64,000 bases of DNA from the NCBI RefSeq assembly GCF_001194135.2, contig NC_068999.1, positions 53,999,947-54,063,946 of the forward strand, written 5' to 3'. Under the pieces are notes generated by a model, which worked only from the letters and a program-made list of their open reading frames with translations, did no database searches and was not told the origin of the DNA. This DNA is from Octopus bimaculoides (lineage: Eukaryota). How positions within the stretch are numbered: the stretch's first letter is position 1; each line of letters opens with the position of its first letter. The position numbers and the translations under genes are program-made. Of the stretch, positions 52,505 through 53,696 are shown in pieces.

Positions 52505-53320
52505 TTAACAAGGCTCCTCCTCTTCTTCCTCCTCATCCAAATCGCCTTCATCAGCAGTAGCATCCTGATATTGTTGGTACTCTGAGATCAAGTCGTTCAT
52601 GTTAGATTCGGCTTCTGTGAATTCCATCTCATCCATGCCCTCGCCAGTGTACCAATGCAAGAAAGCTTTCCTCCTGAACATAGCGGTGAACTGTTCAGAG
52701 ATTCGTTTAAATAACTCTTGGATAGCTGTGCTGTTTCCTACGAAAGTGGCAGACATTTTAAGCCCACGTGGAGGAATGTCACAGACGGCTGTCTTCACGT
52801 TGTTAGGAATCCATTCAACGAAGTAGCTGCTGTTTTTACTTTGGATGTTGAGCATCTGTTCATCAACCTCCTTCATCGACATGCGGCCTCGGAAAATAGT
52901 AGCGACGGTGAGGTAACGACCGTGTCTTGGGTCACAGGCGGCCATCATATTTTTAGCATCGAACATTTGTTGTGTGAGTTCTGGTACAGTTAAAGCTCTA
53001 TATTGCTGACTGCCGCGGGATGTTAATGGGGCAAAGCCTGGCATGAAGAAATGTAAGCGAGGGAATGGAACCATATTTACAGCAAGTTTACGTAAATCAG
53101 CATTCAGCTGCCCGGGAAATCGAAGACATGTTGTAACACCAGACATTGTGGCGGAGACCAAATGATTTAAGTCACCATAGGTAGGAGTGGTTAGCTTGAG
53201 TGTACGGAAGCAAATATCGTATAATGCTTCGTTGTCGATGCAGTAAGTTTCATCTGTATTTTCTACCAACTGATGGATGGATAGGGTTGCGTTATATGGT
53301 TCGACTACAGTATCCGATAC
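52505..53320 (-). CDS. TUBB: Beta-tubulin, coding exon 2 (codons 175-445, [10 protein letters not shown]...[19 protein letters not shown])
   Basis: ORF track 52505..53326. Acceptor TTCTTTTTATTTTCTTGCAG|GTA at 53321/53320. Joined in phase 0 with exon 1 it gives an uninterrupted 445-aa beta-tubulin. Stop TAA at 52507-52505 is followed by a second in-frame TAA. Confidence 0.98.
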
Positions 53321-53696
53321 CTGCAAGAAAATAAAAAGAACCTACTGTAGTCCGAATAAAAACGGTCAAAGAATGCAGAACTAAACTACATTAACTAGGA
53401 AAATACGAATTTCTAGCTTTAAACTTTACAAATGACAACAGTTGTAGGTTAAAAGTAGGAAACATTCATAAAGATAGCAGCCTATGGTGGGAAAGGTTAA
53501 CAATAGTAATCTTTAACTATATATTCTATGTAACCAGCTATAACCAAATTCAATTCAAGTGCGGCGCAAGATAGAACCGGCTGTCAGTATGTATACATCT
53601 AATTTATGCAAGAACAGCGTCGCGCACTTGCAAAAGAAGGCCAACTTCTTTTGCAAGTGGAAAAGATAAAAAACAAAAATAAAAAAATTTACTTAC
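53321..53696 (-). other. Single 376-nt spliceosomal GT-AG intron of the beta-tubulin gene (phase 0, between K174 and V175)
   Basis: GTAAGT donor, polypyrimidine tract plus CAG acceptor, possible branch site TTGAC at about 53369-53365. Removing it restores the conserved PSPK-VSDT junction. Confidence 0.95.
53625..53659. repeat. Perfect 15-bp hairpin (5-nt loop) in the beta-tubulin intron
   Basis: cacttgcaaaagaag-gccaa-cttcttttgcaagtg. Confidence 0.95.

Follow-up and report, generated by a model that had tools for sequence, protein, structure and literature searches.

Among the closest described relatives of the structure reported here are stems in the introns of the yeast genes APE2, RPL23B and ATG38, which, as summarised in PMC11585973, occlude alternative 3' splice sites or approximate the branch point to the true one. 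The same source presents the APE2 intron stem-loop as an RNA thermosensor, with reference to the work of Meyer et al. 2011 and Plass et al. 2012 (PMC11585973).

Two other groups of systems bear on hairpins that lie at splice sites. In the first, RNA editing is involved: exon-intron duplexes act as editing-complementary sequences in vertebrates and insects, as established knowledge has it, and in GluA2 (at the Q/R and R/G sites), insect ion channels and synaptotagmin part of an intron base-pairs, across a splice site, with coding sequence close by. The self-editing of ADAR2 likewise connects the action of ADAR on an intronic duplex with which of several adjacent acceptor dinucleotides is used. 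For both editing-complementary sequences and recoding in cephalopods, PMC5705066 provides the general background. The second group consists of template-switch quasi-palindromes, in which a near-perfect inverted copy of ~10–15 nt lies within tens of bases of its template, and which are over-represented relative to random models. A template-switch origin is demonstrable solely by an outgroup that lacks the repeat.

Here we describe a hairpin that surrounds the 3' splice site of the sole coding intron of a beta-tubulin gene of Octopus bimaculoides. The structure is real; it may have a function, and it may well be an incidental inverted repeat. As in the yeast APE2 intron (PMC11585973), a short stem near the 3' end of the intron contains an alternative acceptor, YAG or AAG in yeast, while the used acceptor is unpaired, and splicing to the hidden site would lengthen the protein in frame by a few residues. 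However, both arms of the yeast stems belong to the intron, in the segment from the branch point to the 3' splice site, whereas in the octopus one arm is exonic and the true site is looped; and while the function of the APE2 stem and its melting with heat were shown by experiment, the octopus stem is a predicted one, with no melting predicted in the temperature range of the animal. The octopus hairpin shares with the GluA2 and insect duplexes the pairing of an intronic segment with coding sequence across a splice site, but those duplexes are much longer, have a strongly conserved intronic arm and documented editing, and are located beside a 5' splice site or in the intron downstream, whereas the octopus duplex has 13 bp and stands at a 3' splice site. 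It also differs from ADAR2, where self-editing creates a 3' splice site (AA to AI), since editing in the octopus could, speculatively, at most destroy a decoy. With the quasi-palindromes it has in common the size and proximity of its arms, and the stretch of DNA around it is likewise rich in short hairpins.

Results

The gene lies on the minus strand of the window, that is, of the whole 64-kb stretch of DNA analysed. Translation together with tblastn places the first coding exon (M1–K174) at 53697..54218 and the second (V175 to the stop) at 52505..53320, both on the minus strand. The sole coding intron (53321..53696, minus strand) has 376 nt, runs from GTAAGT to TTGCAG, and interrupts the frame in phase 0 between K174 and V175. 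The spliced product of 445 aa is identical, letter for letter, to XP_014779004.1, the tubulin beta chain of Octopus bimaculoides, which is encoded on the chromosome-scale record CM046619.1 of GCA_001194135.2; a preliminary description of this DNA had assigned it to a coleoid, and this identity bears the assignment out. The record of the product lists the Pfam domains Tubulin (PF00091) and Tubulin_C (PF03953), and with its GTPase and Tubulin_C domains, MREI N-terminus and acidic C-terminal tail the protein is a full-length beta-tubulin, 93–97% identical to animal beta-tubulins and grouped in a cluster of 15,420 members in a large protein collection. There is a single RefSeq product for the gene and no isoform label on record, the annotation around it contains no other gene within 10 kb, and an Rfam search of 52300-54700 gave no match.

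The hairpin around the 3' splice site is a genuine inverted repeat. Its intron arm, UUCGGACUACAGUA (53343..53356, minus strand; read directly, by script and in folds), contains one upstream CAG and the UA of an upstream UAG, and its exon arm, UACUGUAGUCGAA (53300..53312, minus strand; read directly and by script), extends from the last base of codon D177 through E181. The arms form 13 Watson-Crick pairs (5 G-C and 8 A-U) with one bulged G, which can be assigned to 53352 or 53353 as equivalent choices, and an independent repeat search returned a perfect 10-nt core with arms 30 nt apart. Between the arms is a 30-nt loop (53313..53342, minus strand) that contains the polypyrimidine tract, the true CAG/G acceptor with its G at position 53321, and the opening 8 bases of the exon; in this loop the true CAG (53323-53321) is unpaired. 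Direct reading and the script thus reproduce the pairing given in the preliminary description (13 bp and one bulged G between 53356-53343 and 53312-53300), and the geometry agrees with its statement that the loop holds the whole polypyrimidine tract and the real acceptor; its account of the anatomy is accurate throughout. In the nascent pre-mRNA the inverted repeat probably adopts the form of a local hairpin, at least for a short time. The codons of the exon arm (GAT, ACT, GTA, GTC and GAA) are all among the gene's most used synonymous codons; hence there is no sign of a coding sequence bent to suit the stem, and any selection would have acted on the intron arm alone.

Two YAGs precede the true acceptor (53342..53347, minus strand), namely a CAG ending at 53345 and a UAG ending at 53342. 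The CAG (53347-53345) is fully paired in the stem, and so are the U and A of the UAG (53344-53342). It had been proposed that use of the former would add 24 nt starting with a UAG stop, and that use of the latter would add 21 nt that encode VLFIFLQ in frame; our script gives the same outcome for both. An isoform with the VLFIFLQ insertion (452 aa) has no exact match in a collection of 15 billion proteins, which is weak evidence. In the 20 nt upstream, the true acceptor has 16 pyrimidines (16/20) and the decoys 12–13. A motif scan gave, as the best candidate branch points, the yUnAy-like motifs UUGAC (A53366) and UUUAU (A53357) at 53356..53369 on the minus strand, just 5' of the intron arm or overlapping it, with their adenosines 45 and 36 nt, respectively, from the true AG; a third such motif (A53332) lies inside the loop, 11 nt from the acceptor. 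Downstream of A53366 and A53357 the two decoys, 12–24 nt away and both of the preferred YAG form, come before any other AG, so that with a branch at either upstream motif the decoys would be the first AGs met, and hiding them in a stem would make sense. Among 105 homologous introns, 19% have an AG-free stretch of at most 19 nt. The ACUAC in the intron arm was also considered as a U2-binding branch site and rejected, because it offers no bulged adenosine and misfits yUnAy.

Whether the helix exceeds chance was judged by its length and by its energy. For length, the first 45 nt of exon 2 were compared with 4101 real 60-nt segments from both strands of the 64-kb window, the threshold being 13 pairs with at most one bulge. 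Two of the 4101 segments reach 13 bp (~5e-4 per 60-nt window), and one of these is the gene's own 5'UTR. For energy, the local 67-nt fold has -15.0 kcal/mol and z = -2.38, with 4 of 200 shuffles folding equally well, and z is -1.66 in a 220-nt context and -1.56 in the whole-intron context of 426 nt. The RNAduplex energy was dropped as an uninformative statistic, since 14% of random genomic 60-mers, helped by large interior loops and G-U pairs, attain the same duplex energy with the exon start. The verdict on chance depends, then, on the yardstick: the helix is rare by length and modest by energy. Non-low-complexity hairpins of the same class number six in the 64-kb window, against ~0.8 expected under a first-order Markov null, and the splice-site hairpin is the weakest of the six. 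With ~1 hairpin of the class in every 10 kb, selection is not needed for one to straddle a few tenths of a percent of all acceptor sites. The caveat of the preliminary description, that the stem is short for ADAR and might be a product of chance, stands.

As a homologous control, a degenerate pattern was used to collect more than 100 beta-tubulin loci on metagenome contigs with an intron at the same codon, a position that they share with the bivalve Mactra antiquata. At 119 homologous acceptor sites, the bivalve included, the best intron-exon helix usually has 6–7 bp and never more than 11 bp; a 13-bp helix occurs at none of them (0/119). With no comparable stem in 119 other beta-tubulin genes, the stem is not required by the splice site. 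The Mactra codons are similar (GAT, ACT, GTT, GTA, GAA) and there is no such stem at the Mactra acceptor, a comparison which, given the distance, shows no more than that this splice site has had no ancient need of the stem. The metagenome loci (more than 100) include no cephalopod, the best exon identity among them being 81% and the nearest DNA being bivalve. In the large protein collection, searches with the octopus beta-tubulin found nothing but short fragments or the representatives of clusters from other phyla, and the 15-billion-protein collection contains no exact match to the alternative-start ORF products, poly-Glu length variants or single-residue variants.

The stem is part of the minimum-free-energy fold in contexts of 67, 220 and 426 nt, the sole predicted extension in the 220-nt fold being a 4-bp outer helix across an internal loop. 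By partition function, the pairing probability of the 9-bp core is 0.8–0.97 in contexts up to 576 nt, at which length the outer 4 bp are already lost, and in a 1170-nt pre-mRNA context starting at the 5'UTR the whole stem has a probability of at most 0.2 and alternative partners win. Long-range fold predictions are unreliable, and co-transcriptional folding favours a local hairpin. In these models, the stem is not thermodynamically dominant. The predicted probability of the local core is 0.98, 0.97, 0.97 and 0.96 at 10, 18, 25 and 37 °C, respectively, and that of the core in the 576-nt context goes from 0.97 to 0.79 between 10 and 37 °C. Predicted local pairing is thus nearly flat over 10 to 37 °C, which is not the behaviour of a thermosensor, and a temperature-tuned role is not indicated.

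A related sequence is found in the 5'UTR. The 11-nt copy CGACUACAGUA (54222..54232, minus strand), 4 nt upstream of the ATG, is a perfect complement, over all 11 nt, of exon-arm bases 53312-53302. The 64 kb contain the 10-mer GACTACAGTA three times, compared with 0.1 expected, and all three copies are within the beta-tubulin gene: in the intron arm, in the exon arm (as reverse complement) and in the 5'UTR (54231-54222), where a 5' C extends it to the 11-nt complement. From a TATA box at 54310-54303, ~70–80 nt upstream of the 5'UTR copy, we infer that this copy is inside the transcript. Its reading as the acceptor of a 5'UTR intron (ACTACAG/TAATC) was rejected, given the missing pyrimidine tract and the upstream TATA box, and so was a wider homology between 5'UTR and intron, as the similarity stops at the 10-mer. 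That a helix would fall on the same exon segment by coincidence has a probability of roughly 1 in 1000, judged post hoc.

Discussion

We put at about one half the probability that the hairpin is an incidental inverted repeat with no dedicated role, at an acceptor chosen in the ordinary, tract-driven way. A short inverted repeat such as this one would owe its origin to chance, or else to a local mutation, for instance a template switch, within an intron that is AT-rich and a genome where hairpins of this kind abound; template-switch repeats exceed random models elsewhere, as do the hairpins of the octopus window (6 against 0.8 expected). The strong pyrimidine tract (16/20) and the adjacent CAG would be recognised as single-stranded RNA in the loop, the two upstream YAGs would lose for want of a tract of their own, and the hairpin would not be a site of ADAR editing. 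We infer this neutral origin, and this route of acceptor choice, from the observed sequence, pairing, gene model and statistics, and in particular from the high density of hairpins, the modest z values, an occupancy that is not robust to context, the common codons of the exon arm, the stronger true acceptor and the homologues that are free of the stem. Several observations count against it. The helix length is rare (~5e-4 per window and 0/119), and the placement is the one that a masking stem needs, with the decoys paired, the tract and true site looped, and branch-like motifs upstream. Also, it is hard to credit to coincidence that the 5'UTR of this gene carries the 10-mer a third time, and two of the six hairpins of the window are in one intron.

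Masking of the two upstream YAGs, in the manner of yeast APE2, is plausible by analogy, and the stem would then guide the choice of acceptor by covering the CAG, whose use leads to a stop, and part of the UAG, whose use leads to a 7-residue insertion in the T5 loop. Such a stem would form co-transcriptionally, ~30 nt after the intron arm emerges, and would bring the branch point effectively closer to the true CAG, which the loop presents along with its tract. We consider this tentative, and its odds are well below even. The geometry fits it, in that the candidate branch points A53366 and A53357 lie 5' of the stem and the decoys are the first AGs downstream. The stem is present in the minimum-free-energy folds at 67, 220 and 426 nt, and the APE2, RPL23B and ATG38 stems provide a precedent in yeast (PMC11585973). 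At the locus itself, the one observation that argues for a part in splice-site choice is the rarity of the helix length relative to real-sequence controls. In metazoans, a tract-adjacent AG is usually fixed early by U2AF, and masking may therefore be unnecessary. The decoys have poor tracts (12–13/20 pyrimidines versus 16/20), and an AG-free stretch of at most 19 nt is also found in 19% of 105 homologous introns. Because one arm is exonic, the duplex would have to open around exon ligation. The single RefSeq product with no isoform label is a further point against masking, and a thermosensor version is unlikely, given that predicted local pairing falls no further than from 0.98 to 0.96 between 10 and 37 °C.

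Two further readings involve the exon arm. The preliminary description suggested that the intron arm serves as an editing-complementary sequence through which ADAR acts on A53311 (T178A), A53301 (E181G) and, with silent effect, A53306 or A53300. The codon assignments in this suggestion are right: in T178 (ACT, 53311-53309) the change A53311>G would yield Ala, in E181 (GAA, 53302-53300) A53301>G would yield Gly, and A53306, in a UAG context, is the third base of V179 (GTA), where the change is silent. The animal is a coleoid with extensive recoding (PMC5705066), and both A53306 and the intronic A53343 are in UAG contexts. As the duplex spans the splice site, it could be edited only before splicing. 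The site-selective ADAR substrates that have been characterised are imperfect duplexes of greater length, roughly 20 bp or more, enough for dsRBD binding and deamination; the octopus duplex, with 13 bp and one bulge, is below that length and is A-U rich. Moreover, VSDTVVE accounts for 150 of the 152 instances of the motif in the beta-tubulin matches retrieved and E181 is invariant, and E181G would therefore hit an invariant residue of the nucleotide-binding T5 loop. Neither T178A, nor E181G, nor the double change has an exact match in the 15-billion-protein collection, which again is weak evidence, and no report of editing of octopus tubulin was found in the papers and supplements searched, a set whose coverage stops short of the key octopus editing papers. 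The short duplex and the near-invariant VSDTVVE thus disfavour the suggested recoding, and we regard editing at these sites as very unlikely. Slightly less improbable, though still far from likely, is an element of three arms, in which the exon arm pairs with the intron arm and then, after splicing, with its complement in the 5'UTR, or in which GACTACAGTA is a protein-binding motif at the DNA level. Such a switch of partners by the exon arm would tie splicing status to the structure around the AUG. In its favour are a 10-mer that occurs three times in 64 kb and always in one gene, a 5'UTR copy that is one of just two windows in 4101 that match the helix score of the intron arm, and the probability of 0.78–0.97 that modelling of the spliced mRNA assigns to the 5'UTR-exon helix. 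Nevertheless, the pattern was noticed post hoc, an 11-bp perfect helix is expected, by our own arithmetic, about once per four 1.4-kb mRNAs, the 5'UTR and the intron are alike over the 10-mer alone, nothing similar is seen in the bivalve gene, and scanning and translating ribosomes would open a helix of 11 bp. We know of no regulation of tubulin by RNA structure, which we also count against this idea; tubulin autoregulation works through the nascent MREI peptide. The most elaborate version, and the one to which we give the least credence, is a hand-off from splicing to translation in which codons 177-181 would be a shared dock that hides the decoys and then pairs with the 5'UTR, and in which editing of A53343 could kill the UAG decoy. 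It is speculation that the adenosines of both decoys, A53343 in the UAG and A53346 in the CAG, are open to loss by editing.

If the hairpin is conserved and functional, it would be an animal case of a short stem that hides cryptic acceptors, a device documented mainly in yeast, and its setting would be a cytoskeletal housekeeping gene in an ectotherm noted for plasticity at the RNA level. Exon sequence would then do double duty, as codons of the T5 loop and as a splicing element, and the mechanism would be structure-guided choice of a 3' splice site, one already known and not a new one. If it is incidental, which we judge slightly likelier, the locus illustrates that octopus DNA has several-fold more short hairpins than random models, and hence that neither regulation nor editing can be concluded from the mere fact that a hairpin straddles a splice site.

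Two of the six hairpins of the window are within the same 376-nt intron. The 5' part of this intron contains a separate, perfect 15-bp hairpin with a 5-nt loop (53625..53659, minus strand; z = -3.45), which, read in the direction of transcription from 53659 to 53625, is much stronger than the hairpin at the splice site.

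Results and Discussion

The exonic half of the hairpin that straddles the 3' splice site of the tubulin intron has a second potential partner within the same transcript. Over 11 nt, at 53312-53302, this exon arm is perfectly complemented by the 5'UTR segment CGACUACAGUA (54222-54232, minus strand), which lies 4 nt before the start codon, and in the spliced mRNA the 5'UTR-exon helix is predicted to form with a pair probability of 0.78-0.97. The motif GACTACAGTA occurs three times in the 64-kb window, every copy lying within the tubulin gene.

The same intron (53321-53696) houses two of the six strong hairpins of the window. 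In the other, CACTTGCAAAAGAAG TTGGC CTTCTTTTGCAAGTG (53625-53659, minus strand; z = -3.45), 15 perfectly matched base pairs close a 5-nt loop. This hairpin lies 37 nt into the intron from its 5' splice site, and it has no further copies elsewhere in the window and no match in Rfam. The remaining four non-low-complexity hairpins, of 14-17 bp, are found at 5898-5977, 39682-39724, 45855-45893 and 56288-56320, against a Markov model expectation of ~0.8 for the entire window, which suggests, from hairpin counts in this window, that short inverted repeats are in excess genome-wide.

When the intron was compared with beta-tubulin loci from the bivalve Mactra antiquata (L002) and L004-L123, its phase-0 position, K174/V175, was common to octopus, the bivalve and more than 100 eukaryotic metagenome contigs; thus, judging from sequence, this position appears to be old and widespread.

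Downstream of the coding sequence, AATAAA signals are present at 52383 and 52118. The end of the tubulin 3'UTR may be incomplete in the assembly, because a gap (N run, 51831-52003) sits ~500 nt 3' of the stop codon. Nine more N runs occur in the window, the largest at 61906-62417 and 34316-34760, and several of the gaps have microsatellites, (TA)n or (CA)n, at their edges. Apart from tubulin itself, the 10 kb to each side of the gene contain no annotated gene. At the 5' end, an A18 run precedes a TATAAAAG box (within 54303-54345, minus strand), located ~85-92 nt upstream of the tubulin ATG.
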